The notes: generated by a model from the sequence alone, not told the origin. DNA of 64,000 nucleotides from Macrostomum lignano (GCA_002269645.1 NIVC01001833.1:168578-232577); one strand, 5' to 3'. Positions 8,051-41,865 are shown, numbered from the stretch's first letter. Translations and numbers: made by a program.

Positions 8051-8429
8051 ATTCTCCCCTCATGGAATTTCCAATAATTTCAAATTCGCTATTGAAGTGG
8101 TGAATCTCGTTTCCCATTTAATAAGGGGATTCTAATTTTCTTAAAGATAGTTATAAAATGTTATAATTAAATTAAAATGTGGGATAAAACGTAATGAGAT
8201 GAGTTAACGGTTGCCAGGAGAGCTAGCGAGGTGTTCAGATGGACTTGGACAAAGCAAATTTTGAACAAAAACTTCATTTCTGACGTATTTGTTACACAAA
8301 ACCGCTTTGCCTAATTAATTAATACATAGCACATCTAAACAACCCACTACCTCACCTCGGTAAATTTGATTAACAAATTAACAACCGATTAAATATATAA
8401 TTATTAATCACTTGTAGTTTCGTTTGGTT

Positions 8430-17687: not shown

Positions 17688-18502
17688 CGCGGGTTGCTTT
17701 CATAAACGCAAAACTTTGCAACCGCTAATTTTTTTGCAGTCATTTTCACAACCGCTAAAAAGACTGCCGTATATGAAAGTAAGTGCAAAAATTTTAGCGG
17801 TTGTGAAATTTCGCGTTTGTGAAACCAACCCCCTCTCCCCTCCTTTCTTATTCTATTCTATCCTTTCCTCACCTCTCCTCACCTCCTCCTCACTATCTTT
17901 ACCTCTCAATTTCTCATTGCCTCTCCTCTTCTGTCCTTTCTTTCTCAGTCCCCTCTCTCCCCTCTCCTTTCTTCTACCAGAGTTTTTGCTAAAATTATGT
18001 TTCCAATTAAGATAGTGTCGTTTCTTGCAAAAATTTCTATTTCCCCCCACCTATTTGTGTTTTTTGCGCAAAAATGGACTCAATTATTTTCTTAGAAACT
18101 ATAATGTTCCTGCCGCATCTACTTACTCAGCCTCTCTTAGCTGCATCCAGAAGTTTTAATCCATGTTGTCATGACAACGTTAAAAATGGACGCTGTCTTT
18201 CATATGTCCACTAGCTTTGTTCCATAGTTCCATAGCGTGTCGCATTAAAAATTCACCTAATGACTTTTCCGTGAGAACTTAAATTGAGACTTCGATGCTA
18301 TGTGCCCGTTTGTGTCAGCTGTCCAGTCATTGACGTAAATCATTCCTCACTCTGTGTCTAATTTTAAACTAGAGAGATTTCTTGTTGGTCCAATCACGCA
18401 GACCCGCGACTGCTGCGTGTGAATATTAACAGCTACTTTCGCGGGACTCAGGACCGTCGCATCAAAAAATTTTCATGTGCAAAAATACTGGAGCATTGCA
18501 AC

Positions 18503-20991
18503 ATGAAATTTGCCTTAAGTCTGTACACCTTGGCCTTCTTGACTTCTCTGGCTTGTGGTGAGTAAACACAATGTTAGTTTTGTAAAATGATATTTAAGCT
18601 TACGTGCTACACGGGTCTCTCCTGACATCTTCACTGCGTGTGTCCTCTGACACCCCACTGTCTCTCCTGACATCTTCACTGCGTGTGTCCTCTGACACCC
18701 CACTGTCTCTCCTGACATCTTTACTGCGTATGTCCTCTGACACCCCACTGTCTCTCCTGACATCTTCACTGCGTGTGTCCTCTGACACCCCACTGTCTCT
18801 CCTGACATCTTCACTGCGTGTGTCCTCTGACACCCCACTGACTCTCCTGACATCTTCACTGACCCCGTCGCTAGCCAGTGGGACACCAGCTAACTCTATC
18901 AAAGTCTTCTTCTTCTACCAGAAGTACAGCTTGCACTTTTGAATCCTGTCACGCAACTCCCATCTGATCTCCCCAACTTGCTCGCAGCCGACGTGCCGCC
19001 ATTCGAGCTCACTGAGGCCCCGGTCCAGCTCAACGCCTCCTCGAGCAGCGAGCTTTTCAACTCCACCGGCTTGCGCTCCGACTCCGAGTGCCTCGCCGTC
19101 TGTCGGTCACGTGACTGTCTGGCAACCGCCTTCGTTCCATCGACCGGCTTCTGTCAGCAGCTGTTGGTGCACCACGATTCTCTGGGCCAGCAGCCTCAGG
19201 AGACTCGCGTGGACAGGCGACTGGGAGCCGAGCTGGGCGACTCCGGCATGCGCGTGTGGCGGCGAGAGGACTTCGACAGCCAGGTTGGGCAACGCCGCAT
19301 CGGAGCACCTACGACGACAACTCCGACGACTACTCCAACGACAACTCCAACGACAACTCCGACGACAACTCCAACGACAACTCCGACGACAACTCCGACG
19401 ACAACTCCGACGACAACTCCGATGACAACTCCGACGACTACTCCGACGACTACTCCGACGACTACTCCGACGACTACTCCGACGACAACTCCGACGACAA
19501 CTCCGATGACAACTCCGACGACTACTCCGACGACTACTCCGACGACTACTCCGACGACTAATCCGATGACAACTCCGACGACATCTCCGACGACTACTCC
19601 AACGACAACTCCAACGACAACTCCGACGACAACTCCGACGACAACTCCGACGACAAATCCGACGACTACTCCGACGACTACTCCGACGACTACTCCGACG
19701 ACTACTCCGACGACTACTCCGACGACAACTCCGACGACTACTCCAACGACAACTCCAACGACAACTCCGACGACAACTCCGACGACAACTCCGACGACAA
19801 CTCCGATGACAACTCCGACGACTACTCCGACGACTACTCCGACGACAACTCCGACGACTACTCCGACGACAACTCCGACGACAACTCCGACGACAACTCC
19901 GACTACAACTGCCCCTCCAGTCAGCTACACTATTCAATTTCAAAGTAAGCACTTCCTTTTAGCATGTACGCGTTAGCCAATGAGGCACTCAGAAAAAACA
20001 AAAAGTGCAGTTATGATCGTGTTATATTTTACAGATACAAACACCGGACCTTCCGGCTCGGTGCAGCAGCTGTCAATCAACGCCACCGGCTGCTACCTCA
20101 TCGAGGCCTCCGGAGCCTGGGGCGGCAACAGCACCAGCAGCGGCAAGCTGGGGGGCAAAGGCGCCTTGGCCAAGGGCAACTTCAGCCTGACTCTGGACAC
20201 AACTCTGAGCATCCTTGTTGGCCAGGCGGGTGCAGAGCCCAATGACCACTACGGCGGTGCTGGCGGTGGCGGCGGCAGCTTCGTGTTCATCAACAGCAGT
20301 CCGAAGCAGCTCCTGGTAGCTGCTGGCGGCGGCGGCGGAGCGACGCGGTATTTTGACGGTGAGCTGTGACAGGTTACCTTCTGCTGGATGCTGGGATCCA
20401 CCGAGAGTGATGCTACATGTTTTCTGTTGCATTCCAGGACGCCCCGGCCAGTCCGGCGTGAACGGGACCGACGCAACCCAATCGAGTTCCGGCAAGCCGA
20501 GCTTCGATCACGGCGGTGCCAACGGCGCTGCCGGCTACAATTCTCCCCAGGAAGTGGACAGCAAGGCTACTCACGGCGGCTGCGGCTCGGGCTGGAATGG
20601 CAAGGCTGACAATGTCAGACGAGGCAACAATGACGGAGAACGAGGCGGCTGGCTATTCGACAGCAGCGGAGGTGGTGGCGGAGCTGGCGGCACCTATAAC
20701 GGAGGCGGAAGTGGCGCGGGCACCGGAGGCTTCGGCGGAGGCGGCGGCGGTGGCTGCGGTGGCAGTGGCAGCACGTGCGACAGCGCCTGCTCCGGCCCGT
20801 GCAAATCCTCTGGCGGAGGCGGCGGCGGCTACAGCGGCGGCGGCGCCGGAGTCAACGAAGGTCAAGCTGGTGGCGGCGGCGGCTCCTACTGCTCCGGTGT
20901 CGGCTGCTCCAGCGTCACAGGCGGCTCGGTGAACTCGGCGAATCCGCACGGTCTGGTGACGGTGACCGGGCCTGGCGGCGGCACCTGCTGA
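18503..20991 (+). CDS. Secreted PAN/apple-like + PTTT mucin stalk + ALK/LTK-type glycine-rich domain protein, paralog A (651 aa)
   Basis: join(18503..18557,18922..19944,20035..20358,20438..20991); all introns GT-AG, phase 1; 1956 nt in frame. Signal peptide MKFALSLYTLAFLTSLAC. 4-Cys ECLAVCRSRDCLATAFVPSTGFCQQL resembles PAN/apple. About 50 PTTT repeats. YLIEASGAWGG...GGKGALAKGNFSL...ILVGQAG...GGGGGSFV...LVAAGGGGGA matches the ALK/LTK glycine-rich region pattern. Model supported by the paralog's identical exon phases. Confidence 0.85.
18615..18862. repeat. 45-bp minisatellite in intron 1 of paralog A
   Basis: GTCTCTCCTGACATCTTCACTGCGTGTGTCCTCTGACACCCCACT, about 5 copies. Inverted homolog at 30560-31800. 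Confidence 0.9.
19308..19910 (+). repeat. 12-bp coding minisatellite (CCGACGACAACT) encoding the PTTT mucin-like stalk
   Basis: In frame within exon 2 of paralog A; absent from paralog B. Confidence 0.9.
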
Positions 20992-21104
20992 GCTGATGCT
21001 GGACACTCGGGATCGACGGAAAATAACGGAGTTGAAATGAAACTCCAAGGACCCACTTTCAAGATAATAGCTGGGAGATTTCCGTGTCTGCCATTAATAT
21101 CTTC

Positions 21105-21450
21105 TTAGCTACAGAGGGGGCGCCAGCTACAGAGGGGGCGCCAGCTACAGAGGGGGCGCCAGCTACAGAGGGGGCGCCAGCTACAGAGGGGGCGCCAGCT
21201 ACAGAGGGGGCGCCAGCTACAGAGGGGGCGCCAGCTACAGAGGGGCGCTAGCTACAGAGGGGTGCCAGCTACAGAGGGGTGCCAGCTACAGAGAGGGCAC
21301 CAGCTACAGAGGGGTGCCAGCTACAGAGGGGGTGCCAGCTACAGAGGGGGTGCCAGCTACAGAGGGGGTGCCAGCTACAGAGGGGGTGCCAGCTACAGAG
21401 GGGTGCCAGCTACAGAGGGGGTGCCAGCTACAGAGGGGGTGCCAGCTACA
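21105..21450. repeat. 18-bp minisatellite (CAGCTACAGAGGGGGCGC) downstream of paralog A
   Basis: Visible; inverted homolog at 27700-28172. Confidence 0.93.
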
Positions 21451-21914
21451 GAAACTGAGACAGGCCGGGTTCACCTGTGTGCTGTTGAGTTGTCTTTACA
21501 AATTAAGCAAAGCTTCTGTCAGTGGGCCATTGATGTCAATAATATTCGAATGCAATATTTATACTTTAACCCGAATCAGCTCTTTTCAATAGCAAAATGC
21601 TATTTTACATGTATTTTTGTTTAACCTTCAAGTCAATATCAAGATATTCGATATTTATTATTACTCTAAAAAGTTAATAACGAATCCCCTATTCATTTTT
21701 TTCAAAAGTTTTTAAACTACCTTGCTTATATGCTTCTATTAAAACCAACCCTTTAAAATCTATTTCTGATTAATTATAGCTCATATTTTTTCTGTCTCTG
21801 GGCTGTCTCTAAAAAAGAATTTAATTGAATACACTGAATAATTTAACCCAAAAAATTCTGCTTTTTCAGTGCCATGGTGACTTGTTTTTTAAATAGGTGG
21901 CCCTGAGTCCTCTA

Positions 21915-22420
21915 AGTGAGTCCCTAGATCCTTCAGTGAGTCTCTAGATCCCTTATCGAGTCCCTAGATCCCTCACTGAGTCCCTAGATCCCTCACTGAG
22001 TCCCTAGATCCCTCACTGAGTCCCTAGATCCCTCACTGAGTCTTTAGATCCCTCACTGAGTCCTTAGATCCCTTACTGAGTCTCTAGATCCCTCACTGAG
22101 TCTTTAGATCCCTCACTGATCTTTTAGATCCTTCACTGAGTCCCTAGATCCCTCACTGAGTCCCTAGATCTCTCCCTGAGTCCCTAGATCTCTCACTGAG
22201 TCCCTAGATCCCTTACTGATCTTCTAGATCCCTCAGTTAGTAACTAGATCCCTCAGTGAGTAACTAGATCCCTCACTGATGTTCTAGATCCCTCAGAGAT
22301 TAACTAGATCCCTCACTGATCTCTAGATCCCTCACTGAGTCCCTAGATCTCTCACTAAGTCCCTAGATCCTCCTCACTGAGTCTCTAGATCCCTCACCGA
22401 GTCCCTAGATCCCACTGAAC
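21915..22420. repeat. 20-bp minisatellite (GAGTCCCTAGATCCCTCACT), inner end of left arm
   Basis: Visible; inverted homolog at 26925-27240. Confidence 0.9.
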
Positions 22421-22754
22421 CCCTACATGTAGATCCTAGTTTCCTCGACAACCTCATTCACGTGACTAACCTGTAGCCCAACAAAGGCAGGCCCACGGGA
22501 AAATGTGATGCTCATAAATTCACAGCAGGTTGAATTCTGGGCCTTCCCAAAAACTCTTTTTTAAATCCTTCTGGCAAGAAATATTTAGCACAGTCAAAGG
22601 CTGGTTACTAAGCAATTAAAACTCAGAGAAAAACTGAAACAAAGAAGATTTTAACTTGCCTGTTCTATTCAAAGTCTTCTCTTTATCTCTTTTGTCTGAC
22701 AGCTGTTGTTAAAATAAAGGCAGATATAGCTTACTGACTGGGAGAGTATAATGA

Positions 22755-23310
22755 GTAGAGTAGAGCCGAGTAGGTTAGATAAGAGTAGAGTAGAGTGGAG
22801 TAGAGTGGAGCAGAGTAGAGTAGAGTAGAGTGGAGTAAAGTGGAGTGGAGTGGAGTAGAGTGGAGTAGAGTGGAGTAGAGTGGAGTAGAGTGGAGTAGAG
22901 TGGAGTAGAGTGGAGTAGAGTGGAGTAGAGTGGAGTGGAGTGGAGTGGAGTAGAGTAGAGTGGAGTGGAGTGGAGTGGAGTGGAGTGGAGTGGAGTGGAG
23001 TGGAGTGGAGTGGAGTGGAGTAGAGTGGAGTGGAGTGGAGTAGAGTGGAGTAGAGTAGAGTGGAGTGGAGTGGAGTGGAGTGGAGTGGAGTGGAGTGGAG
23101 TGGAGTGGAGTAGAGTAGAGTGGAGTAGAGTGGAGTAGAGTGGAGCAGAGTAGAGTAGAGTAGAGTGGAGTAGAGTGGAGTAGAGTGGAGTAGAGTGGAG
23201 TAGAGTGGAGTGGAGTAGAGTGGAGTGGAGTAGAGTAGAGTGGAGTGGAGTTGAGTGGAGTGGAGTGGAGGAGAGTGGAGTACAGTAGAGTATCGCAAAG
23301 TAGAGTAGAG
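22755..23310. repeat. (AGTGG/AGTAG)n pentanucleotide microsatellite
   Basis: Directly visible. Confidence 0.95.
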
Positions 23311-23744
23311 TAAGATAAAGTAGGGTGCACTGGAATAGAGCAGAGTCGATGCAGTTAGAGTGGAATATTAGCAAAGCAGCAGCTCACTCATACTGTTTGA
23401 AGGCAGACATGCCAGCAAATTCTGCATTGCCCAACCTGCATTTGAGCCATGTTCGCAAACAGCTCCAGCTTAATTCCTAACTGTCCTTTTCTTAATCCCC
23501 CCTGGTTCAGCACTTATTATTCTTGAAGTGAACAAACCCTGTCTCTCTCTACACGCAAGAGAACTACCCCCCCCCCCCAGCCAGAGCTGGTCTCAACTTT
23601 GAAAATTTAATTAAACCTCAGCAGATGGAAGAGAGCAGTGGCGCATAGGAGAAAAGCAGGGAGCAAACAGAGCTAATTGTTAGCACAGAGGTGACAGAAC
23701 GGTGCATATTTAAGTACGATATGGCTGGCAAGTTGCCGCTTTGC

Positions 23745-23752
23745 TATATAAA
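23745..23752 (+). promoter_or_regulatory. TATA box upstream of the orphan gene
   Basis: TATATAAA about 120 bp upstream of ATG 23865. Confidence 0.45.
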
Positions 23753-23864
23753 AGACTGCAAGGCTCTCTAGACCGTTTTTCTCAACTGCAAAAAACGAAT
23801 AAATCGAGGCCCATCACCCTGCCTGTCTGAGACTAGACTCAAAAAAGCCTCCAAAAGACCAGAA

Positions 23865-24989
23865 ATGGAAGACCCAGTCGTGAAACTGAGACGCTGCAAA
23901 TCTGCCCGACCAGACATGGCTCGGAGATCCCGGTAACATGATTTATTATTAATAATCTAAGATTGATTAATGAGTAGTGAGTTTATTAACTGTGTCGCAT
24001 TGCAGCACTGACAATCGCTGGGATCCCTGGGATCCGGTGGTCCAGGCTCGAATCCTGCCGCTCGGCACTAAGCACTGGAGTCAGATGAAGGCTCAGGTAT
24101 GTAGAAGAAGTAGAATGTACACTCTGTGACTTAGAGGCTGGCCCTCATGGACATGCGATGTACATACATTTGTGCGTATCAATTCGATACATATCGTCAA
24201 GTAATATAGTCAATAACGAAGTATACTTACCTGCAAATCTTGCTTATAGCACATCTTATTGAGCACATCTCACTGATAACATCTCACTGATGAGCACATC
24301 TCACTGAGCACATCTCACTGAGCACATCTCACTGAGCACATCTCACTGAGCACATCTCACTGAGCACATCTCACTGAGCACATCTCACTGAGCACATCTC
24401 ACTGAGCACATCTCACTGAGCACATCTCACTGAGCACATCTCACTGAGCACATCTCACTGAGCACATCTCACTGAGCACATCTCACTGAGCACATCTCAC
24501 TGAGCACATCTCACTGAGCACATCTCACTGAGCACATCTCATCGAGCACATCTCACTGAGCACATCTCACTGAGCACACTAATCCCCTTTATTTTCACAG
24601 GCCACCGCAAACTGCCCCTCGACATCCAAAAAAGACACTTCGGTGCAATTTGCTTTGCCAGACAACGAGAAGCAACAGAAGTCTGCTGGTGGAGGCCCTG
24701 AGGTTTGAAGAATCAGGAGCTGTCAGAATCTTCTCATTATCGAAAGAATTATAATTAGGCTCAAATTCCCACAACTCCGTTGTAGAAATTCAACAGACCA
24801 AGGACTGCTGCCGAAGCCACCACAGCCGCCGCCCTCCCAGTCGCCATGGACGGCTTGCGCATTCGCAGGTCACCGCATCCGGGCTCTCCAAGCTGGCTAG
24901 CGAAGCTCAACACTGGCTACAATCAAAGGGCCAGACAGGGCTTCGTGTACTGGTTCACCGGACGGCCGAAACCGACTCAATGTGAATAA
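23865..24989 (+). CDS. Hypothetical 154-aa protein, 4 exons, no recognised domain
   Basis: join(23865..23932,24006..24096,24601..24702,24786..24989); GT-AG introns, phases 2/0/0 consistent, 465 nt ending TAA that overlaps AATAAA. Exon 2 is open in only the frame required. MEDPVVKLRRCKSARPDMARRSRTDNRWDPWDPVVQARILPLGTKHWSQMKAQ...GFVYWFTGRPKPTQCE. Confidence 0.6.
24260..24578. repeat. 14-bp minisatellite (TCACTGAGCACATC) in intron 2 of the orphan gene
   Basis: Visible, about 20 near-perfect units. Confidence 0.93.
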
Positions 24990-25054
24990 AATGATAGCTG
25001 ATGATGGCTGCTTCGTTGTCAAGGGGTTCTGATTAGACGCATTTGGTTCCCTCT

Positions 25055-25590
25055 GTGAGATCGTTTGATGTTACCTTAATTCCTTAATTCCCCGACAAAA
25101 TCCTCTGGTATTCCTTAATTCCTCTGTGAGATCCTTTTATGTGCCTTAATTTCCTACAAGATCCTTTGACGCGTCTTAATTCCCTTACAAGACCCTTTAA
25201 TGTGCTTTAATTCCCCTACAATATTGATGTTGTCTTAATTCCCCTACAAGATCCTTTGATGTTGCCTTAATTCCCCTACCAGATCCTTTGATGTTGCCTT
25301 AATTCCCCTACAAGATCCTTTGATGCGCCTTAATTCCCCTACAAGATCCTTTGATGTTGCCTTAATTCCCCAACATTATCATTTGTTGTGTCTTAATACC
25401 CCTACTAGATCCTTTGATGCGCCTTAGTTCCCCTACAAGATCCTTTGATGTTGCCTTAATTCCCCTACCAGATCCTTTGATGTTGCCTTAATTCCCCTAC
25501 TAGATCCTTTGATGTTGCCTTAATTCCCCTACCAGATCCTTTGATGTTGCCTTAATTCACCTACAAGATCCTTTGATGTGCCTTAATTCC
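25055..25590. repeat. About 32-bp minisatellite (GATCCTTTGATGTTGCCTTAATTCCCCTACAA)
   Basis: Visible, degenerate on the left. Confidence 0.88.
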
Positions 25591-26024
25591 TTAATTGACT
25601 AAACAATTCGACAAGAAATCGTGCCTCACCGTCCCCGCAGTCGGTCGGTACAGCACCGGAGCGAAGCACATGCAGTACGGTCTCGGCATGGCGCCAAGAA
25701 GTTAAACGAAAGTTAGACAACATTTCGATGAAGACGAAGAAAACATTTCTGTCCTATTAATAGCATTAACCAAAAGGTCTGCACAGAATGTACGTTTACA
25801 ATGAACAGTAAATATTAGTTGTATATTTTTTGCACAAGTAACGCCTTTTTAATTACAACATAAAACTTTGAAACACTGTTTAAAATTGCTTTCAATCAAA
25901 TATACAGTAGAAAGCTTCTAAAATTTTATTTTTCGCTAACCGTATTTCGTAGAATTTTGTTTTTATTCCACGTAAATATGAATTCAGATTCAATAGCCAT
26001 CTGTTTTAATGGATGCTAGCTGCA

Positions 26025-26905
26025 TCACTCCAAGACTCTCGATGATCTAGTGAGCGTCACTCCACTCTCGATGATCTAGTGAGCCTCACTCCAAGACTCT
26101 CGATGATCTAGTGAGCGTCACTCCACTCTCGATGATCTAGTGAGCCTCACTCCAAGACTCTCGATGATCTAGTGAGCGTCACTCCGCTCTCGATGATCTA
26201 GTGAGCGTCACTCCGCTCTCGATGATCTAGTGAGCGTCACTCCAAGACTCTCGATGATCTAGTGAGCGTCACTCCGCTCTCGATGATCTAGTGAGCGTCA
26301 CTCCACTCTCGATGATCTAGTGAGCCTCACTCCAAGACTCTCGATGATCTAGTGAGCGTCACTCCACTCTCGATGATCTAGTGAGCCTCACTCCAAGACT
26401 CTCGATGATCTAGTGAGCGTCACTCCGCTCTCGATGATCTAGTGAGCGTCACTCCGCTCTCGATGATCTAGTGAGCGTCACTCCGCTCTCGATGATCTAG
26501 TGAGCGTCACTCCGCTCTCGATGATCTTGTGAGCATCACTCCACTCTCGATGATCTTGTGAGCGTCACTCCACTCTCGATGATCTTGTGAGCATCACTCC
26601 ACTCTCGATGATCTAGTGAGCCTCACTCCAAGACTCTCGATGATCTAGTGAGCGTCACTCCGCTCTCGATGATCTAGTGAGCGTCACTCCGCTCTCGATG
26701 ATCTAGTGAGCGTCACTCCGCTCTCGATGATCTAGTGAGCGTCACTCCGCTCTCGATGATCTAGTGAGCGTCACTCCGCTCTCGATGATCTTGTGAGCAT
26801 CACTCCACTCTCGATGATCTTGTGAGCGTCACTCCACTCTCGATGATCTTGTGAGCGTCACTCCAAGACTCTCGATGATCTAGTGAGCGTCACTCCAAGA
26901 TACTC
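26025..26905. repeat. 29/31-bp minisatellite (CTCTCGATGATCTAGTGAGCGTCACTCCG)
   Basis: Visible, about 30 units with two length variants. Confidence 0.93.
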
Positions 26906-26924
26906 CAGATAGAGGTATATAGGG

Positions 26925-27240
26925 TGAGGGATCTAGGGACTCAGTGAGGGATCAATGGACTCAGTGAGGGATCTAGTGACTCAGTGAGGGATCTAGTGAC
27001 TCAGTGAGGGATCTAGGGACTCAGTGAGGGATCAATGGACACAGTGAGGGATCTAGGGACTCGGTGAGGGATCAATGGACACAGTGTGAGATCTAGGGAC
27101 TCAGTGAGGGATCAATGGACACAGTGTGAGATCTAGGGACTCAGTGAGGGATCTAGGGACTCAGTGAGGGACCTAGGGACTCAGTGAGGGACCTTAGGGA
27201 CTCTATGAGGGACCTAGGGACTCACTTAGAGGACTTAGGG
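26925..27240. repeat. 20-bp minisatellite (AGTGAGGGATCTAGGGACTC), inverted copy of 21915-22420
   Basis: Reverse complement of the left-arm unit. Adjacent unique sequence is also homologous (CACTTAGAGGACT...GGGCCACC...AAGTCACCATGGCAC). Confidence 0.9.
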
Positions 27241-27699
27241 CCACCCATTAAAGAAGCAAGTCACCATGGCACTGCAATTATTGGGACGGCATTTAAAAAC
27301 AGAATAGTTTCGGTCAAATTTTCCTGTGTATTAAACAAAAACCTCTTTAGAAACAGTCCAGAGAAAATCAGAGTTATTTTTTCAAAGCAAAAAAGTTAAA
27401 AAACTCTCTTTGTTTTACATTATTAAATAGCGGTTTTTTACAAGCGTAAAAAGTTAGAAAAAATTTAAGATAGGGAAATATTATTGACCTATAAGACTAG
27501 TAAATATCGATTCTCTTAATATTGACTTGAAAGTTGAACTAAAATAGAAGTACATTTTCCTACTGAAAAAGGCTTATTTTGGGTTAAAGCATAAATATTG
27601 CATTTGATTATGATTGATATTTATGGCACACTGACTGAAGCTTGGCTCAATTTGTAAAGACAACTCAACACCACACAGGTGAACCCGGCCTGTCTCAGT

Positions 27700-28172
27700 T
27701 TCTGTAGCTGGCACCCCTCTGTAGCCGGCTCCCCTCTGTAGCTAGCGCCCCTTTGTAGCTGGCGCCCCCTCTGTAGCTGGCGCCCCCTCTGTAGCTGGCG
27801 CCCCCTCTGTAGCTGGCACCCCCTCTGTAGCTGGCGCCCCCTCTGTAGCTGGCACCCCCTCTGTAGCTGGCACCCCCTCTGTAGCTGGCACCCCCTCTGT
27901 AGCTGGCACCCCCTCTGTAGCTGGCACCCCCTCTGTAGCTGGCACCCCCTCTGTAGCTGGCGCCCACTCTGCAGCGGGCGCCCCTCTGCAGCTGGCACCC
28001 CCTCTGTAGCTGGCGCCCCCTCTGTAGCTGGCGCCCCCTCTGTAGCTGGCACCCCCTCTGTAGCTGGCGCCCCCTCTGTAGCTGGCACCCCCTCTTTAGC
28101 TGGTGCCCCCTCTGTAGCTGGCACCCCGTCTGTAGCTGGCGCCCCCTCTGTAGCTGGCGCCCCCTCTGTAGC
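27700..28172. repeat. 18-bp minisatellite, inverted copy of 21105-21450
   Basis: TGTAGCTGGCGCCCCCTC units. Confidence 0.93.
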
Positions 28173-28309
28173 TACGAAGATATTAATGGCAGACGAGGAA
28201 ATCTCCCAGTTATTATCTTGAAAACGGATCCTTCGACCCTCTGTTTCGTTTAAACTTTCATTTCAACTCCGTTGTTTCTCCGTCGCTCCCGAGTGCTCAG
28301 CTTCAGCCC

Positions 28310-31300
28310 TCAGCAGGTGCCGCCGCCAGGCCCGGTCACCGTCACCAGACCGTGCGGATTCGCCGAGTTCACCGAGCTGCCTGTGACGCTGGAGCAGCCG
28401 GCACCGGAGCAGTAGGAGCCGCCGCCGCCACCAGCTTGGTCGCGGTTGACGCCGGCTCCGCCGCCGCTGTAGCCGCCGCCGCCGCCGCCAGAGGATTTGC
28501 ACTGGCCTTCGCAGGCGCTGCCGCACTTGACGGCACCGGCGCCGCAGCCACCGCCTCCGCCGCCGCCGAAGCCTCCGGTGCCCGTGCCGCTTTTTCCTCC
28601 AGCTCCGCCAGCGCCTTCGGTGCCGTCAAAAATCCAGCCGCCTCGTTCACCGTCGTAGCTGCTCAGTCTGGGGTTGGCGGCCTTGCCACTCCAGCCCGAG
28701 CCGCAGCCGCCGTGCCTGGCCAGGTTCTCGACATCACTCGGCTGGTTGTAGCCAGCAGCTCCGTTGGCACCGCCGTGGTCGAAGCTCGGCCTGTCCGAAG
28801 TCGATAGGGTTGCGCCGGTGCCGTTCACGCCCGACTGGCCGGGTACACCTGAACGAAACAGCAGTGTTTGTAGAGACAGAAGAGAGCCAGTCAGTCAGTC
28901 AGTCAGTCAGTCAGTCAGTCAGTCAGTCAGTCAGTCAGTCAGTCAGTCAGTCAGTCAGTCAGTCAGTCAGTCAGTCAGTCACCCACTCACTCAAGTCAGT
29001 CAGTCAGTCAGTCAGTCAGCTCACCATCAGAGTACTGTGAAGCTCCGCCGCCGCCGCCAGCAACTACCAGGAGCTGCTTCGGGCTGCTGTTGATGAACAC
29101 GAAGCTGCCGCCGCCTCCGCCGGCACCGCCAGCCTTGTCATTGGGCTCTGCGCCCGCCTGGCCAACAAGGATGCTCAGAGTTGTGTCCAGAGTCAGGCTG
29201 AAGTTGCCCTTGGCCAATGCGCCTTTGCCGCCCAGCTGGCCGCTTTTGGTGTTGTTGCCGCCCCAGGCTCCGGAGGCCTCGATGAGGTAGCAGCCAGTGG
29301 CGTTGATTGACAGCTGCTGCACCGAGCCGGAAGGTCCTGTGCTCGAGTCTGGTAGTTTGGAGTAAAATTAAAACTCATGTATAAAAGTAGGGCCCATGGT
29401 CGATATATAGGATCAATTGTTTTAAGACAGTGGTTGTAAAGTACGAGTATTTTATAGAGAATCCAGCTTCATGGGTGCGGGCCAGATGAGAGTGGAAAGG
29501 ATAGGGAATGGAAGAAGAGAGATGAGAGAAGAGAGGAGAGATGAGAGGAGAGATGAGAGAAGAGAGGAGAGATGAGAGGAGAGAAGAGAGAGGGGAGAGA
29601 AGAGAGAGTTTGAGATGAGAGAGGTTGAGAAGAGAGAAGGAGAGAAGAGAAAGGTTGAGATGAGAGATGTTGAGAAGAGAGGAGAGAAGAGAGAGGTTGA
29701 GATGAGAGAGGGGAGATAAGAAGAGAGAAGAGCTAGGGGAGAGAAAAGAGAGGGGAGAGAAGAGAGAGGGGAGAGAAGAGATAGGTTGAGATGAGAGAGG
29801 TTGAGAAGAGAGAGGTTGAGATGAGAGAGGTTGAGGTGAGAGAAGAGAGGGGAGAAGAGTAGATTTAGAGAAGAGGAGAGACGGGACACGAGACTGAGAG
29901 AAGAGGGGACCCCGCTGCTTAAAGACAAAGTTAAAAAAAACTTTCTGAAGGCCATTTTAATCTACAATATACGACCAAACACAGCTAAAGAGGTCTTGAA
30001 GACTTTTAACAGCGATTTTTGCCAACGACCTTAATTTAGAAAGTCTAGACATTTTTGGTTGTTCGAATGAGTGCTTTTACTTACTTCGAAATACATGTAC
30101 GGACGTCGGCTTGAACCGGCGTTGCCCAACCTGGCTGTCGAAGTCCTCTCGCCGCCACACGCGCATGCCGGAGTCGCCCAGCTCGGCTCCCAGTCGCCTG
30201 TCCACGCGAGTCTCCTGAGGCTGCTGGCCCAGAGAATCGTGGTGCACCAACAGCTGCTGACAGAAGCCGGTCGATGGAACGAAGGCGGTTGCCAGACAGT
30301 CACGCGACCGACAGACGGCGAGGCACTCGGAGTCGGAGCGCAAGCCGGTGGAGTTGAAAAGCTCGCTGCTCGAGGAGGCGTTGAGCTGGACCGGGGCCTC
30401 CGTGAGCTCGAATGGCGGCACGTCGGCTGCGAGCAAGTTGGGGGGATCAGATGGGAGTTGCGTGACAGGATGCAAAAGTGCAAGCTGTACTTCTGGTAGA
30501 AGACTTGTAGACTCGGACTTCAATGAAGTCAGCTGATGTCTCGTTGCGGCCAGCGATCGGGTGTCAGAGGACACACGCAGTGAAGATGTCAGGAGAGACA
30601 GTGGGGTGTCAGAGGACACACGCAGTGAAGATGTCAGGAGAGTCAGTGGGGTGTCATAGGATAAACGCAGTGAAGATGTCAGGAGAGTCAGTGGGGTGTC
30701 ATAGGATAAACGCAGTGAAGATGTCAGGAGAGTCAGTGGGGTGTCATAGGATAAACGCAGTGAAGATGTCAGGAGAGTCAGTGGGGTGTCAGAGGATAAC
30801 GCAGTGAAGATGTCAGGAGAGTCAGTGGGGTGTCAGAGGTCACACGCAGTGAAGATGTCAGGAGAGACAGTGGGGTGTCAGAGGACACACACAGTGAAGA
30901 TGTCAGGAGAGACAGTGGGGTGTCAGAGGATAAACGCAGTGAAGATGTCAGGAGAGTCAGTGGGGTATCAGAGGACACACGCAGTGATGTCAGGAGAGTC
31001 AGTGGGGTATCAGAGGACACACGCAGTGATGTCAGGAGAGACAGTGGGGTGTCAAAGGACACACGCAGTGAAGATGTCAGGAGAGACAGTGGGGTGTCAG
31101 AGGACACACGCAGTGAAGATGTCAGGAGAGACAGTGGGGTGTCAGAGGATAAAGGCAGTGAAGATGTCAGGAGAGACAGTGGGGTGTCAGAGGATAAACG
31201 CAGTGAAGATGTCAGGAGAGTCAGTGGGGTATCAGAGGACACACGCAGTGAAGATGTCAGGAGAGTCAGTGGGGTGTCAGAGGATAAACGCAGTGAAGAT

Positions 31301-31910
31301 GTCAGGAGAGACAGTGGGGTGTCAGAGGATAAACGCAGTGAAGATGTCAGGAGAGTCAGTGGGGTATCAGAGGACACACGCAGTGAAGATGTCAGGAGAG
31401 ACAGTGGGGTGTCAGAGGATAAACGCAGTGAAGATGTCAGGAGAGGCAGTGGGGTATCAGAGGACACACGCAGTGAAGATGTCAGAGGACACACACAGTG
31501 AAGATGTCAGGAGAGGCAGTGGGGTATCAGAGGACACACGCAGTGAAGATGTCAGAGGACACACACAGTGAAGATGTCAGGAGAGTCAGTGGGGTATCAG
31601 AGGACACACGCAGTGATGTCAGGAGAGACAGTGGGGTATCAGAGGACACACGCAGTGAAGATGTCAGGAGAGACAGTGGGGTGTCAGAGGATAAACGCAG
31701 TGAAGATGTCAGGAGAGACAGTGGGGTGTCAGAGGATAAACGCAGTGAAGATGTCAGGAGAGACAGTGGGGTGTCAGAGGACACACGCAGTAAAGATGAC
31801 ACGTACGGAAGCTTAAATATCATTTAACAAAACTGACGCTAAGAGTTGACCTTACCATAAACCAGAGAAGTCAAGAAGGCCAAAGTGTACAGACTTAATG
31901 CTAATGTCAT
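28310..31910 (-). CDS. Secreted PAN/apple-like + ALK/LTK-type glycine-rich domain protein, paralog B (441 aa, no mucin stalk)
   Basis: complement(join(28310..28848,29025..29348,30085..30492,31856..31910)); all phase-1 GT-AG introns; 1326 nt. Signal peptide MTLALSLYTLAFLTSLVY. Exon 3 has the same length as in paralog A (324 nt). Confidence 0.85.
28888..29020. repeat. (CAGT)n microsatellite in intron 3 of paralog B
   Basis: Visible; absent from the 79-nt homologous intron of paralog A. Confidence 0.95.
29505..29905. repeat. GA-rich low-complexity repeat in intron 2 of paralog B
   Basis: Visible; the homologous intron of paralog A is only 90 nt. Confidence 0.9.
30560..31800. repeat. 45-bp minisatellite in intron 1 of paralog B (expanded)
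   Basis: Reverse complement of the 18615-18862 unit, about 5-fold longer. Confidence 0.95.
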
Positions 31911-32454
31911 GTTGCAATGTTCCAGTACGCTCGTACAGTTTGAGTTGGAATTTTTTGCACTGAAATTTCTTGGTGCGATGGTCCCGAGTTCCTAAGTTTC
32001 CCTGTTAATATGCTTCCGAAAGAAGACAATTGCGATGCAGTCACGATGAGTCTGCTTGATAGGGTGCGCTGCTTTTGCCTCGGGCCAAAAAAAATTATGG
32101 GCGGGCTTTTTTTACAAGAAGTTAAAATTAGGCTCTTTAAACTCGAGTGCACTTTAAAGCATCTAGAGTCGAAGTAGTCTAATTAGTGTTCACGGCACAT
32201 CTTCAAAGAGTCCCTACCCCTATTGTCTATTAAACAATGGGACGGGAGCCACCCACCTGCCTGAATACATGCACCTGCAGCAAGCAGGAAATTTTTTAAT
32301 GAGACAGCAGAAGCTGCATCGCATGCTTTAGTTGCTAAGTGGTGGGTGACTACGGAGAAGTAAGACAGTTCTTAGTAGCTAAAAGCAAAAACCTATGCCA
32401 AAAGCAAGAACCAAGCTTTGACAAACAAATTCTGAGCAAAATACGTTACTCGTA

Positions 32455-34869: not shown

Positions 34870-37800
34870 TTAATTTTTCTCCACAACTGGCGAGTTTTCT
34901 GCGGTGGGCGGCTGAACCACAATCCTGGGCGCGTCTAGCAGCAGTGGGTTCGATTCCTCCGGTCTGTCCGAACTGTCCGGAGGGGGTGAGTTAATGCATT
35001 TGTGTCCGAGTGACAATAGATAGGTGTCCGAGAGATAATGGACTTGTGTCCGACAGATAATGGACTTGTGTATGGGAGATAATGGAATTGTGTCCGGAAG
35101 ACAATGGACTAGTGTCCGAGTGACAATAGATCTGTGTCCGAGAGATAATGGACTAGTGTCCGAGAGACAATAGATAGGTGTCCGAGAGATAATGGACTTG
35201 TGTATGGGAGATAATGGACTTGTGTCCGGGAGATAATGGACTTGTGTCCAGGGGATTTGTGTCCGAGTGACAATAGATAGGTGTCCGAGAGATAATGGAC
35301 TTGTGTCCGAGAGATAATAGACTTGTGTATGGGAGATAATGGACTTGTGTCCGGGAGATAATGGACTTGTGTCCAGGGGATTTGTGTCCGAGTGACAATA
35401 GATAGGTGTCCGAGAGATAATGGACTTGTGTCCGAGAGATAATAGACTTGTGTATGGGAGATAATGGACTTGTGTCCGGGAGATAATGGACTAGTGTCCG
35501 AGACAATAGATAGGTGTCCGAGACATAATGGACAGGTGTCCGAGAGATAATGGACTAGTGTCCGAGTGACAATAGATAGGAGTCCGAGAGATAATGAATT
35601 TGGATTAATGAACATACCCGGCCGCATCGTCCTTCCTAGGCCGTCGTTGCATCTGGCCCCGGTCACCAGCGCCCTTCTCGTCCATCTCGTCCGACACATT
35701 GAAGGTCACTTCGATAGATTTTTTCTTTTTAACAGCGGACGAATGAGCGACGCCCTCTGGAGTCTCAGACATTGGCATGTCGACTGTTGCGTCGTTTTTG
35801 TTGGACTCGGGATTTGAACCGTCCGTTCCTCGTCCGCAGCACAGCGTGATGGGGGGCATGATGTCGTCCAGCCACCTCAGCTCGGTTGTAGTGAACAAGT
35901 GGTTCAGCGCCCATCGCACGAAGCACATGGCCAGCACCATGACGGGGAACAGGATGGAGATGGCCGAGATTGCTTTCACAACCCAAAGCAGGACCAGGCA
36001 GGTCACTTGGATGATAGTGAACTTGTGCACCTGCATGATTTTCACGTGCCTGCGGGGCGATTGATGGATCCCACTAGCTTATGGGATTATCAGGTACAAG
36101 AGGACCTGGGAGGCTGGTCCAGAAACTGGGGATCTGGGAGGCTGGTCCAGAAACTGGGGATCTGGGAGGCTGGTCCAGAAACTGGGGATCTGGAGGCTGG
36201 TCCAGAAACTGGGGATCTGGAGGCTGGTCCAGAAACTGGGGATCTGGAGGCTGGTCCAGAAACTGGGGATCTGGGAGGCTGGTCCAGAAACTGGGGATCT
36301 GGGAGGCTGGTCCAGAAACTGGGGATCTGGAGGCTGGTCCAGAAACTGGGGATCTGGGAAGCTGGTCCAGAAACTGGGGATCTGGGAGGCTGGTCCAGAA
36401 ACTGGGGATCTGGGAGGCTGGTCCAGAAACTGGGGATCTGGGAGGCTGGTCCAGAAACTGGGGATCTGGGAGGCTGGTCCAGAAACTGGGGATCTGGGAG
36501 GCTGGTCCAGAAACTGGGGATCTGGGAGGCTGGTCCAGAAACTGGGGATCTGGGAGGCTGGTCCAGAAACTGGGGATCTGGGAGGCTGGTCCAGAAACTG
36601 GGGATCTGGGAGGCTGGTCCAGAAACTGGGGATCTGGGAGGCTGGTCCAGAAACTGGGGATCTGGGAGGCTGGTCCAGAAACTGGGGATCTGGGAGGCTG
36701 GTCCAGAAACTGGGGATCTGGGAGGCTGGTCCAGAAACTGGGGATCTGGGAGGCTTGTGGCACAGCAACTGAGGATCTGGGAGGCTGGTGGCACAGCAAC
36801 TGAGGATCTGGGAGGTGGATGGCCCAGCAACTGGGGATCTGGGAGGTGGATGGCCCAGCAACTGGGGATCTGGGAGGCTTATTTTTGCCTCTAAATCTAC
36901 AGGAGACGGTACCAAAAAACAGTCTCACCTGAGGAACCTGTAGTCTGGCTGGTACTTCTGCGGCATGAAGAAAAGCCCCACCCGCTGCACGAACTGCACG
37001 CCGCGCAGGCTGGAGATGCCCATGAACAGGAACACTCCGTACAGCACCGGCATGGGGATGTGCTTGAGCACCGGGGTCAGGAAGACGGACAGGCCGATGA
37101 GCAGGAAGATCAGGAAGCCGGTGACGCGGTTCTCGCTGAAATTAAATTGCAAGCACGCAAAAAAATGGCGATAAAGCAGCATTATTAATCTCCATTAGGA
37201 ATATCCCTTAAATTTTCTAAAAAGTTAGTTACTCAATAAATTCTTCAAGAATTACCCATTGAATTCTCCCATAATTCCCCCATTGATTTCTCCCAGAATT
37301 CCCCACTGAATTGTCCTAGAATTCCCCATTGGTTTCTCCTAGAATTCCCCATTGGTTTCTCCTAGAATTCCCAATCGAATTCTTTCAGAATTCCGCATTG
37401 AATTCTCCCAGAATTCCCCATTGAATTCTCCCAGAATTCCCCATTGAATTCTTCCAGAATCCTCCCACTGAATTCTCCCAGAATTCCCCATTGAATTCTC
37501 CCAGAATTCCCCATTGAATTCTCCCAGATTTCCCCATTGAATTCTCTTAAATCGGCTTTGATTTACAACCATAGAATTTCTAATAGAATTCCCTAAATAC
37601 TAATTTGAGAATTATGCTAGAATGTTATAAAAATTCTTCTTAGGGAACTTTCCCAAGAACTCAAGCCAGACAAAAATCTGTGAATCTAATAAAAACTCAA
37701 TAAATATACTCACCGACACCCGAGGAACTTGGGCCTCTCCCCCGGAGCAGTTGTCTCGCTCTCAATTTTCAAGGCCATCACGTGATTGATTGACAGCACG

Positions 37801-40800
37801 GTGGCGGCAACAAACCAGGGAATGCCCAGAATAGAATTGATGCCAATCAGCACTGCAACAATCAGCAAGTCAAGATGATAGCCCAAGCCTTTCTTCAGCT
37901 TGTTCTCTTTGCGATTGACAATCACAGCTGTGATCTGCTGGTCCATGAAGATCAGAATAGTTGCTAGGAGAGCCGGCAGCAGGGCCAGTGGGATGGAGTA
38001 CCAGGGATTCTGATTGCGAGTACCGAACGGCGAAACCAACCAGCCCCTGGTCTCGTAGCCCAGCGTAGGCGAGAAGGACTCCGGGACGTGCAGTTTAGGA
38101 GTCTGCAGGCCTACCAACAGGTCCAAACCAGTCATGGCAACAATCGCTATCATCACAGCGAAATCGCTAATGACCATACGGACTCGGTTAGGAAAGAATG
38201 GCGAAGTTCGCATCAGTTTGAGTCCATAGCTGATCACAAATGTGCCAATAGCCAGCAGGCAGGAGAAGAAGAATACGTCTGGTACGGCGAACTTGCCGCA
38301 CCCGCTGCCAACCCACTGGCCCAGCTGGGCGGTGCACAGCTTGTTATTCTTGTCCCAGTCCCAATCGTAGTACACAATGGCAGTGTGGTTAGTGTAATAC
38401 CTGCCATCGGAGTCGTTGTAGCTGGGTATTCTCAGATGCTGGCCCTGAGCTAGCGGTTTCGATTGGTTGAGATTCGACTCGCAGATGCAATTGAAATCCG
38501 GCAGGTAGTTGGGATGCCAGTCAGGATTAATAGGATAAGCTTTCAGTATGTTGCGCAACTTTTTGAAGGCTTCGATGATGAAGATGAGAGCGATTAGGCT
38601 GGCGAAAGACTCTTCTGTGAAGCGGGTGATGTACCTGCGGGATTGAGGATGGATGAAGGACTTAGTAGATTGGCAATTACCACTAAGTAAATTCCTTATT
38701 GCACACAAATTTACCCCCTAGTTTATACCTGAATAAACACTAGTTTATACTCAATAGGCACTTCAGTTTATACTCCTGTAAACACATGAGTTTAAACTCA
38801 AATAAACAGTCACCACTTTCAACCCAAATAAACACTCTAGTTTGTAGCTGAATAAACATCCTCTTTATACCCAAAAGAAAACCCAGTTTACACTCACATT
38901 AACAACCTAGTTCAAACCCAAATAAACACCCGAGTTTTTACCCAAATAAACCCAAGTTTATACCCAAATAAACCCCAGTTTAAACCCAAATAAACACCCC
39001 AGTTTAAACCAAAATAAACACCCACTTTAAACCCTAATAAACACCCCAGTTTTGAACCCACAAACACCCCACTTAAAATCCAAATAAACACCCGAGTTTT
39101 TACCCAAATAAACCCAAGTTATACCCAAATAAACCCCAGTTTAAACCCAAATAAACCCAAGTTTATACCCAAATAAACACCCCAGTTTAAACCCAATCAA
39201 ACACCCCACTTAAAATCCAAATAAACAATCCCGTTCAAACCCAAATAAACACCCAATTTAAACCCAAATAAACACCCAGTTTAAACCACAAATAAACACC
39301 CGTTAAACAAAAAAACCCAGTTTAAACCCAAATTAACACCCCAGTTTAAACCCAATCAAACACCCCACTTAAATCAAAATAAACAACCCCAGTTTAAATC
39401 CAAATAAACACCCCTTTTATGGATATTAAAAACAGCCATAAAACTCAAAACTCACTTGACCAAAGCGCTCAAATCGAAGGCCACAACGGTGAGCAAAATG
39501 AGAAATATCCACAAGCCAACCCACATTCGAAATGACAGATAGTCCCAGCCCAGCGAGTTCTTGCTGAACCTGAATATGATTGACTCGAACACGAGCATGG
39601 GACCGGTGGAACCTGTTGCCGCAGGTATGAAGGAAAAGATTACGGATATGAATGCGAGTACACAGTTGCGGAATCTTCAACCTAGAAACTGCTTTCTCAT
39701 GATAAATCTCACGGCTCTGACATATTTTATGTTAACTATGGTTAACTATCAGATATATTATACCATCTTCTCTAAACCATCCCATAGTTCTCTATCATCT
39801 ATCTCATAGTTACCTCTCATTTATCTCATAGTTCTCTGTCATCTATTTCATAGTTCTCTCTCATCTATCTCATAGTTCTCTCTTATCATCTCATAGTTTT
39901 CTCTCATCTATCTCATAGTTCTCTCTTATCTCATAGTTCTCTCTCATCTATTTTATAGTTCTCTCTCTCATTTATCTCATAGTTCTCTCTCATCTATTTT
40001 ATAGTTATCTCATCTTTTTCGCACTATACTCTTATTTAGAAAAAATAAACAATCCTAACCGAGATTAAAATACAACCATAAACAGACGATATGTTTTGAA
40101 AACAATATAAAACTCAGCCGGCAGAGACAAATTACCCAATATGGTGAGCGGCTGTCCGGAGCACAGAGCGAAGAGAGTGCCACAGATGGCACCAGACAGG
40201 ATGGACTCCATAGCGCCCAGATAGCCTTCAGTCTCGTCAGACAGCAGGCCGCCAAAGGTGATGATGGGAGTCAGACAGGCAAAGTACAGAAAGAAGAAAG
40301 CGCCAATAGTTTGCACGTGAATAGCGTCGCGAATATCTGACCAATAGAATGGCGCTTTGCGTTTCACATCTTCAACCAGGCCGCCAAAAAGTCTACCAGT
40401 GATGCGCAGTGACGGATCCGTGTGACAGGTCTCCTCATAGGCCGGGGGACTGTCTCCATTGGGTCCGGACTTTGATAACAGATTGGCGCCAGATGATGCG
40501 GTGGCGCTGCCTCCGCCTTCGCCGCCATTTGAGCCGCTGGCGAGCTCGTGAGATGCCAGCGCGGCGGGAACGGCTGGAGTTTCGGAAAAAATGGATGATA
40601 ATTTTCGGAAATATTGAAAAATATAATAAAATGCGCTACTAGGCTACTTAACAGTCGATATTCAGTAGTATAATTAGGAAAAATAATAATCAACGTCAAA
40701 GTCAATCCTAGTGACTTACAAGCCGACGTTCCAAGAAGAGCATTCGAACCGGTGACAGGTACAGAGCCCTGTTTGCGAGGCTCCTGGGAGGGCACCTCCT

Positions 40801-41826
40801 TCGGTGGCTCAATTCGAATCGATGGGTCCCATTCGTTTGGCGGCAGAACTGTGCAGGATTTCAGGAATTCATCCACGCCGCAGAGCAGGTCGTCCTGTTC
40901 AAGGCAGATGTGGTTGAGATGATATAACTTAGTGAGGTGGGTGACTGAGATAAGAACACAGCGAGAGCGGAGTGGGGTGGGTGACTGAGATAAGAACACA
41001 GCGATAGCGAAGTGGGGTGGGTGACTCAGATAAGAACACAGCGAGAGCGGAGTGGGGTGGGTGACTGAGATAAGAACACAGCGAGAGCGGAGTGGGGTGG
41101 GTGACTCAGATAAGAACACAGCGATAGCGGAGTGGGTTGGGTGACTGAGATAAGAACACAGCGATAGCGGAGTGGGGTAGGTGACTGAGATAAGGACACA
41201 GCGAGAGCGGGGTGAGGTGGGTGACTGAGATAAGAACTCTGCGATAGCGGAGTGGGGTGGGTAACTGAGATAAGAACACAGCAAAAGCGGAGTGAGGTGG
41301 GTGACTAAGATGAGCACACACCTTGCTCTTGGCCAGGTAGGCCACATCGTGGAAGACCTCATCAGACATGAGCGTGGCCATGCTCCTGCCCATCTCGTGA
41401 AAGTTGGCACTCTGTCCCGGCGGTCCCAGCAGCACGTAGATGAACCTGGTCGGCACTGGAACCTCGGTGAGATCGCCCAGCACAACGGCAGTTTTCAATC
41501 GAATAAACGCCGTCACAGGATGGTCGAGAAAGTCGGTACTGCCAACCAGGATGTTGGAAGTCTCAGCTCCTGGCGGAATTTTCTTCATGAAGTGCTGGTC
41601 GAACCGGTAGCTGCTGGCGGACGCAGTGAGCTCTGGTCCCTCTGCTCCGTGCTGCTGGGCTTCTATGTCGCCGCGGCTGCTGTCTACATGCTTCAGATTG
41701 CCGACTGATGGGTGAACGGCGTCTGCGGGTGTGATAGGGTGAGGCAAAGTGAGGCATATCGCATATAATATCGTCTTTCACAGACTATTCCTGAACTTAA
41801 CACAAACTTGAACATACTTAAAAATT

Positions 41827-41865
<39 letters not shown>

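Follow-up and report, generated by a model that had tools for sequence, protein, structure and literature searches.

To our knowledge, animal studies of the glycine-rich domain (GRD) of ALK type have been limited to two receptor kinases, ALK and LTK, in which it binds the ligand. The domain recurs as the distal, receptor-recognising part of the fibre of cyanophage Pam3. The tip protein gp24 of Pam3, which is TNF-like and Gly-rich, has been tied in the literature both to ALK and to gp38 of the T-even/S16 phages, where a scaffold of Gly motifs carries variable loops that are proven determinants of specificity and where the Gly motifs have been proposed as recombination hotspots. A described system of another kind is the homogenisation of palindrome arms, as on sex chromosomes. 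Both systems are compared here with a locus of the flatworm Macrostomum lignano, in which two genes, A and B, lie in an inverted duplication and encode a PAN-like domain joined to an ALK-type GRD. The locus belongs to a stretch of 64,000 nt (GCA_002269645.1, NIVC01001833.1:168578-232577), analysed as a whole and called here the window; all positions are window coordinates.

A preliminary description of this DNA, whose background statements on the ALK GRD and phage gp38 agree with the literature, had presented the pair as a candidate diversified recognition system with constant N-termini and variable loops. The joint explanation favoured here, which is considered probable, is that A and B are paralogous secreted PAN-like/GRD proteins belonging to a family, that their pattern of near-identical and diverged segments is a mosaic left by gene conversion, and that their loops evolve under relaxed constraint.

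The inverted duplication and its two genes

Comparison of the left half of the window with the reverse-complemented right half (blastn), together with the inverted repeats I1-I25, delimits a left arm at ~18486-22428, with gene A and shared 3' minisatellites, and a right arm at ~26924-31927, with gene B. Between the arms, a spacer of ~4.5 kb (22429-26923) without inverted match consists of unrelated minisatellites, detected with Tandem Repeats Finder (TRF), and short unique pieces containing short open reading frames (ORFs) only. The two genes converge tail to tail on this spacer. Conservation between the arms is uneven. The inverted repeat 18911-19297 versus 30117-30503 (387 nt) is 99% identical, while 20032-20366 versus 29017-29351 (335 nt) and 20701-20992 versus 28309-28600 (292 nt) are 91% and 90% identical. 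All best protein matches to the locus are M. lignano proteins. Among them, UniRef entry A0A1I8G511 matches gene A and pieces of the spacer at 100% and then continues antisense to gene B. This entry is a chimera produced by automatic annotation and, since it crosses from gene A through the spacer into antisense gene B, an independent assembly shares the order and orientation seen here.

Both genes have four exons, intact frames, canonical GT..AG introns and the same intron phases. Gene A, on the plus strand (18503-18557, 18922-19944, 20035-20358 and 20438-20991), encodes 651 aa; gene B, on the minus strand (31910-31856, 30492-30085, 29348-29025 and 28848-28310), encodes 441 aa. Exon 1 provides the ATG and a hydrophobic leader, MKFALSLYTLAFLTSLAC in A (18503-18557, donor GTGAGT, phase 1) and MTLALSLYTLAFLTSLVY in B (31856-31910). 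Exon 2 of A (18922-19944) comprises a PAN-like four-cysteine domain (18922-19298), a (PTTT)50 stalk and a short linker, and ends at the phase-1 donor TTTCAAA/GTAAGC. Exon 2 of B (30085-30492) comprises the PAN-like domain and the 10-residue linker FKPTSVHVFR, and ends at the phase-1 donor TTTCGAA/GTAAGT. The GRD starts in exon 3 (20035-20358 in A; 29025-29348 in B, where an alternative in-phase acceptor lies at 29336) with TNF-like strands and the first poly-Gly motifs, and is completed in exon 4 (20438-20991 in A; 28310-28848 in B), which runs to ...GPGGGTC and then the stop codon.

Between the two copies, 49/55 positions are identical in exon 1, 295/324 in exon 3 and 460/538 in exon 4, and the shared part of exon 2 has 4 differences in ~376 nt. 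Introns 2 and 3 of A and B cannot be aligned. Intron 1 of A contains a 45-nt minisatellite of 5.5 copies (18615-18861; inverted repeats, TRF and blastn), the unit of which also fills intron 1 of gene B with 27.7 copies (30559-31798; TRF), the arms being 94-96% identical to each other in this minisatellite. Most of intron 3 of gene B is a (CAGT)33 microsatellite at 28888-29019; its counterpart in gene A has 79 nt of unrelated sequence. The architecture given in the preliminary description thus stands, from the two convergent 4-exon genes in an inverted duplication (blastn arms, in-frame exons and GT/AG introns) to the near-identical PAN exon and the near-identical C-terminus, with 2 differing positions in the last 42 residues; all six A/B peptide pairs that it quoted are present in the translated genes.

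A glycine-rich domain of ALK/LTK type

Profile searches and modelling identify the C-terminal part of A and B as a genuine ALK/LTK-type GRD, with a predicted TNF-like sandwich and polyglycine lattice. The GRD of B scores 29.1 bits against PF12810 (cutoff 24.5); that of A, 83% identical to it, scores 14.4 bits alone and is sub-threshold. A family profile that includes the window exons matches human ALK (E 2.4e-38) and LTK (E 1.3e-33) at positions 22-310 of 313. Structure was modelled on a paralog, P0143, with 48-50% identity to A and B, whose AlphaFold2 (AF2) model has a predicted local distance difference test score (pLDDT) of 85-97 in the GRD. Searched with Foldseek against the PDB, the P0143 model has ALK/LTK as all of its top 21 matches (E 1e-10 to 4e-5, probability 1.00), and the first non-ALK fold match is the fibre of cyanophage Pam3; the gp38 sandwich is absent among the top 50 PDB fold matches listed for P0143. 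Since polyglycine-II (PGII) helices carry no DSSP label, the polyglycine-II lattice was assigned via the fold match of P0143.

In both genes the stop codon follows ...GPGGGTC directly, and those paralogs whose C-termini are complete terminate at the same conserved cysteine. In both genes and in these paralogs, no kinase, EGF-like module or transmembrane segment follows the GRD, and the spacer has no long ORF downstream of either gene. Because nothing follows the GRD, A and B are not receptor kinases. The polyglycine domain of ALK/LTK type (PF12810 for B, the family profile against ALK, the fold matches of P0143) and the kinase-free proteins with an N-terminal hydrophobic leader had both been announced beforehand, and correctly so.

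Compared with ALK/LTK (human; SCD-2 in Caenorhabditis elegans), homology extends over the whole PF12810 domain, with the Gly motifs and TNF-like strands conserved in A and B. The differences lie around and within the domain: A and B lack the EGF-like module, membrane helix and kinase that follow the GRD in the receptors, their N-terminal partner is PAN-like and not MAM/LDLa, and the flatworm GRD contains an extra C-x7-C-x3-C-x3-C insert. The likeness is one of domain and fold and would not imply binding of ALKAL-type cytokines.

The fold has also been met elsewhere. A search of viral models (BFVD) with P0143 finds the ALK-type GRD fold widespread in the virion and fibre proteins of phages (best E 2e-13) as well as in giant-virus proteins. 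Many of these viral proteins are automatically named 'receptor protein-tyrosine kinase', a misnomer that is also attached to the flatworm proteins described here.

The N-terminal domain and the stalk of copy A

The N-domain, of ~100 residues with four cysteines, is probably PAN/apple-like. Of its four cysteines, three are invariant and one is found in 9/10 paralogs; a PAN/apple domain (PROSITE PS50948) would be expected to have conserved core cysteines (C-x3-C-x4-C-x11-C hairpin) around a helix that packs on a beta-sheet. Against Pfam PAN_1 (PF00024) it reaches 13.5 bits (E 0.065), below the cutoff of 21.4, and paralog N-domains obtain 16.2 and 15.8 bits over the same profile segment, again sub-threshold. 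With the B exon-2 domain as query, phmmer retrieves a true multi-PAN protein, P0133, at E 3e-4, and in an hhalign comparison with true PAN repeats the alignment of the cysteine core is weak (probability 17.7%, E 1.4e-3). A phmmer search of the N-domain against the PDB returned only chance immunoglobulin matches. The AF2 model of B exon 2, a strand-helix-strands arrangement of low confidence (pLDDT 55), has its best fold matches in the plasminogen and HGF N-domains and in the apple domains of SML-2, Wsc1 and MIC4, all at E >= 0.27. The automatic UniProt name of the gene A product is 'Apple domain-containing protein'. Of the PAN domain named in the preliminary description, the four cysteines conserved among paralogs and a consistent sub-threshold PAN_1 signal remain, while the Pfam score and the fold matches fall short of a firm assignment.

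The two copies also differ downstream of this domain, where copy A has the order PAN-like domain, (PTTT)50 stalk, GRD. The mucin-like (PTTT)n repeat, which had escaped the preliminary description, has a 12-nt unit and occupies 19308-19910 on the plus strand in exon 2 (TRF and codon bias). With 49.9 copies and 0% indels (TRF), it stays in frame for ~600 nt and yields ~200 residues. Variant codons are synonymous in 27/36 cases in the PTTT frame versus 1/35 and 4/34 in the other frames; such a bias in this frame only means that the repeat is translated. The frame of gene A leads from the PAN-like domain through the 12-nt repeat to a phase-1 donor homologous to that of B, and gene B has the 10-residue linker in place of the repeat. 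Copy A would thus have gained a mucin-like stalk between PAN-like domain and GRD, and the stalk may be O-glycosylated. An alternative in which the repeat is an intron was discarded: the only nearby donor (CAG/GTTGGG), joined to the acceptor, would leave the wrong phase, and substitutions in the repeat are of coding type.

Constant ends probably homogenised by gene conversion

Silent sites show that the two copies are a mosaic. Nei-Gojobori estimates of the synonymous substitution rate (dS) between A and B are 0.03 in the N-domain, 0.19 in exon 3, 0.28 in exon 4 and 0.25 in the GRD overall. The N-domain differs at 3/126 third positions and the GRD at 54/286 (Fisher p 9e-7). The longest stretch that A and B share without a difference, 188 nt, was reached in 0/20000 permutations (p < 5e-5). 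At the other end of the genes, the last 42 codons contain 36 silent sites, all of them identical (binomial p 3e-5 versus the silent rate of the remaining GRD), and the 3' flank beyond is only 87% identical. Two homogenised tracts can be delimited in this way: tract 1 at 18911-19297 in arm A and 30117-30503 in arm B, 99% identical with a dS of 0.03, and tract 2 at 20863-20991 in arm A and 28310-28438 in arm B.

The behaviour of the N-domain in the wider family helps to decide how these tracts arose. Between paralogs, identity is 28-35% in the N-domain and 46-54% in the GRD; the A/B pair reverses this trend, with 100% in the N-domain and 83% in the GRD. The domain that is least conserved across the family is therefore constant in the pair probably because of local gene conversion. 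Homogenisation of the constant parts was local and recent, and gene conversion between the arms is its simplest mechanism. Conversion would have homogenised the PAN exon together with the 42 C-terminal codons, the remainder keeping an older divergence. That the constant part was homogenised by conversion had been foreseen in the preliminary description and is supported by the contrast in dS and by the silent sites of the C-terminus; the constant N-terminus described there belongs to this pair and is not shared by the family.

As in the palindromes of sex chromosomes, short tracts are near-identical at silent sites, here within arms that have diverged by 9-15%. In contrast to those palindromes, homogenisation of the arms is far from complete, with tracts of just ~130-390 nt.

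Probable relaxed constraint on the loops

Replacements are clustered between invariant Gly motifs, as originally described, and in the P0143-based model the A/B differences sit in segments that are neither strands nor Gly motifs, a location that relaxed constraint would also produce. The GRDs of A and B differ at 48 residues. Selection on them was estimated from the two sequences by Nei-Gojobori counts, with positions classed by their conservation in 42 other GRDs. At family-variable positions, the ratio omega of the nonsynonymous rate (dN) to dS is ~0.6 (dN 0.18-0.20, dS ~0.30), versus 0.07-0.27 at family-conserved positions. Loop positions have a lower dN than dS (Fisher p 0.08). No window of the A versus B comparison has an omega significantly above 1; the highest candidate is the Cys-braced C-x7-C-x3-C-x3-C insert (CGAGAVKCGSACEGQC / CGGSGSTCDSACSGPC), with omega ~1.9 and a non-significant p of 0.43. 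In 20-codon windows, the proportions of silent (pS) and replacement (pN) differences covary; rho is 0.80 for the entire gene (p 9e-6) and 0.64 when the GRD is taken by itself. Replacement density thus tracks silent density, and clustering is largely a mosaic of divergence ages combined with relaxed constraint on the loops.

Collectively, the loops are mainly under relaxed purifying selection, and the Gly motifs and beta-strands are strongly conserved. Adaptive diversification of the loops is unsupported. The dN/dS check that the preliminary description had itself suggested gives relaxed and not positive selection, and with a loop omega of 0.6, a rho of 0.80 and no window convincingly above 1, its diversified recognition system is not upheld. 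The combination of constant ends and variable middle would be a conversion mosaic, in which loop replacements accrue under relaxed purifying selection. Phage tips likewise have a Gly-motif scaffold with variable loops, but the specificity-determining role proven for the gp38 loops is not matched by a signature of positive selection in the flatworm loops.

Alternative explanations

It is most improbable that the inverted pair is an artefact of assembly, in which two haplotypes or homeologs were joined head to head. The genome of M. lignano is duplicated and repeat-rich, ~48% of the 64-kb window being tandem repeat with dozens of different minisatellite units (TRF), and related UniRef models deviate slightly from the window. 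Yet the exons of the arms diverge by 9-15%, introns 2 and 3 are unalignable, and a 600-nt coding insertion and unequal minisatellite copy numbers separate the arms, which is excessive for alleles of an inbred line. An older ML2-based UniRef model, P0123, spans gene A, the spacer, antisense gene B and an antisense anion-exchanger gene, a layout that implies the same order and orientation in an independent assembly. Another explanation, that one copy is a decaying or non-functional duplicate whose differences reflect neutral drift in a pseudogene-to-be, is very unlikely. It could account for the leader of gene B, where basic residues are absent and the terminal ...SLVY makes a poor site for signal peptidase, and for the sub-threshold Pfam score of the GRD of A (14.4 bits). 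It does not fit the frames and splice sites, all intact across 441 and 651 codons, the omega of 0.07-0.27 at conserved positions or the strong synonymous bias in the PTTT repeat.

A third possibility, considered unlikely, is that the loops are under diversifying selection and that the paralogs form a germline repertoire of binding specificities (immune, mating or adhesion), with an N-module kept constant by conversion; Gly-motif DNA may then be a hotspot of recombination, a role also suggested for it in phage gp38. Near-confinement of replacements to loops between invariant Gly motifs would be expected of such a repertoire, and loop omega, at 0.6, is far above that of the scaffold. The Cys-braced loop, with its omega of ~1.9, is different again in further close paralogs, where it reads CGGSSNKCNGACSGQC and CGGGGNKCDSACSGPC. 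In one UniRef model, located beside the same anion-exchanger gene, exon 3 resembles A and exon 4 resembles B, and the GRD fold forms the receptor-binding tip of phage fibres, with the gp38 Gly motifs as proposed hotspots. These observations have to be set against the absence of any region with omega significantly > 1, a loop dN below dS, and a replacement density that follows silent-site density as expected from a mosaic of divergence ages. Moreover, the N-domain is the least conserved across the family, so that the system has no constant module, the paralog P0134 stands alone without an inverted partner, and mosaic UniRef models derive from an error-prone assembly. In its most specific form, a germline repertoire of soluble recognition proteins whose GRD loops, especially the Cys-braced insert, are adaptive and in which Gly-motif DNA promotes patchwise exchange between paralogs, the idea is judged distinctly improbable. 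If true, it would provide an animal counterpart of the design of phage adhesins, with Gly motifs and hypervariable segments.

The favoured explanation, a conversion mosaic with relaxed loops in a family of secreted PAN-like/GRD proteins, has its own weak points. The omega of ~1.9 (p 0.43) falls in a disulfide-braced C-x7-C-x3-C-x3-C loop, and with two sequences and a simple count, the loop omega of 0.6 could hide a few positively selected sites. Conversion was deduced from the comparison of A with B alone, and since tract 1 begins just 11 nt before the exon at its 5' edge, unusual selection acting on the exon would fit as well. The fold of the GRD is that of a paralog 48-50% identical to A and B, the N-domain model has low confidence (pLDDT 55), and both the secretion of the proteins and the splicing of their genes are predictions from sequence.

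A family in M. lignano with distant relatives

An exhaustive phmmer search with the B exon-2 domain against 1.84 billion representatives returned 14 proteins only. Apart from the multi-PAN protein P0133, each one that was looked up could be traced to M. lignano (one being an ENA contig). The M. lignano matches that were read or scanned have the same N-domain, then a GRD wherever the model extends far enough, and counting distinct units gives at least 10 paralogs in this species. One of them, PAA78312.1 (L001 10001-12085; NIVC01000695.1, GCA_002269645.1), has the same PAN-like/GRD exon layout without any inverted partner within 10 kb; its sequence is too distant from A and B to serve in a phylogenetic test of conversion. 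As it stands alone, the palindromic arrangement is not a rule of the family.

Beyond flatworms, the profile search finds an octocoral PAN_1 plus GRD protein, stand-alone coral GRDs of ~300 aa and an amphioxus protein, and very many bacterial surface proteins also match. The octocoral protein, LOC114528171 of Dendronephthya gigantea (419 aa), resembles A and B in architecture, with PAN_1 (31.8 bits) and GRD. The relatives in the coral Oculina patagonica and in amphioxus are stand-alone, kinase-free GRD proteins of ~300 aa. Coral proteins and flatworm GRDs have in common the motifs GERGG, HGGxGxGW and AGGGGGSYCSGxxC. In contrast to the octocoral protein, the flatworm N-domain stays below PAN thresholds and, within the 1.84 billion representatives, turned up in M. 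lignano only; copy A also has a mucin stalk. The domains and the PAN plus GRD architecture are already catalogued by automatic annotation, and the A/B pair represents new members. Literature searches on Macrostomum glycine-rich, PAN or ALK proteins and on PF12810 found no paper on these proteins.

Possible function and significance

Hydrophobic leaders, many N-x-S/T sequons, the PTS (Pro/Thr/Ser) stalk and the lack of an anchor suggest that A and B are secreted glycoproteins. PAN/apple domains generally mediate protein or carbohydrate binding. By analogy with ALK and with phage fibres, in which the GRD is the module that binds the ligand, A and B most likely act in extracellular binding or adhesion, perhaps in association with mucus or surfaces.

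The locus shows the ALK-type GRD as a free secreted module combined with a PAN-like domain and, in one copy, with a mucin stalk, and it offers an experimentally accessible kinase-free GRD. Expansion of the family in a tractable flatworm, with relatives in corals, amphioxus and phages, bears on the origin of the ALK ectodomain. The pair is also a clean and small example of how partial gene conversion within an inverted duplication can mimic a design of constant frame and hypervariable loops.

Neighbourhood of the pair

Directly upstream of gene B, a multi-exon anion-exchanger gene of SLC4 type occupies ~35575-45633 on the minus strand, with HCO3_cotransp scores of 324, 134 and 77 bits on three ORFs. 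The UniRef models P0121 and P0122 wrongly fuse this anion exchanger to a PAN-like/GRD gene, which is gene B or a homeologous copy. P0121, aligned to window positions 20055-20240 and 28520-28729, has an exon 3 that is 98% identical to that of gene A and an exon 4 that resembles B. Either it represents a homeologous copy whose history is mosaic, or the older assembly may have produced an artefact. As proof of exchange between the genes it was rejected: changes specific to B explain its pattern equally well, and its source assembly is error-prone.

Within the spacer, the unique pieces at 24007-24099, 24577-24702, 24786-24980 and 25629-25757 on the plus strand recur in five UniRef models for paralogous GRD genes, spliced on at the 3' end, with amino acid identities of 81-100%, mostly 93-100%. 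These pieces are better conserved than the GRD genes themselves. The peptide common to the five models has no Pfam match, and the pieces could be a 3' untranslated region or read-through, a repeat, or a small gene.

The window had no Rfam match. An 8-kb array lies at 4-8059, with a 40-nt unit in 200 copies (96% matches). ORFs at 58843-59493 on the minus strand give sub-threshold matches to a transposase of P-element/THAP9 type (TNP-like RNase H 20.8 bits, Tnp_P_element 17.8 bits) and are probably a transposon remnant. Finally, a degenerate telomere-like array of TTAGGG/TTAGGT/TTTGGG variants lies at 44614-44946, in an interstitial position near the first exons of the anion-exchanger gene.

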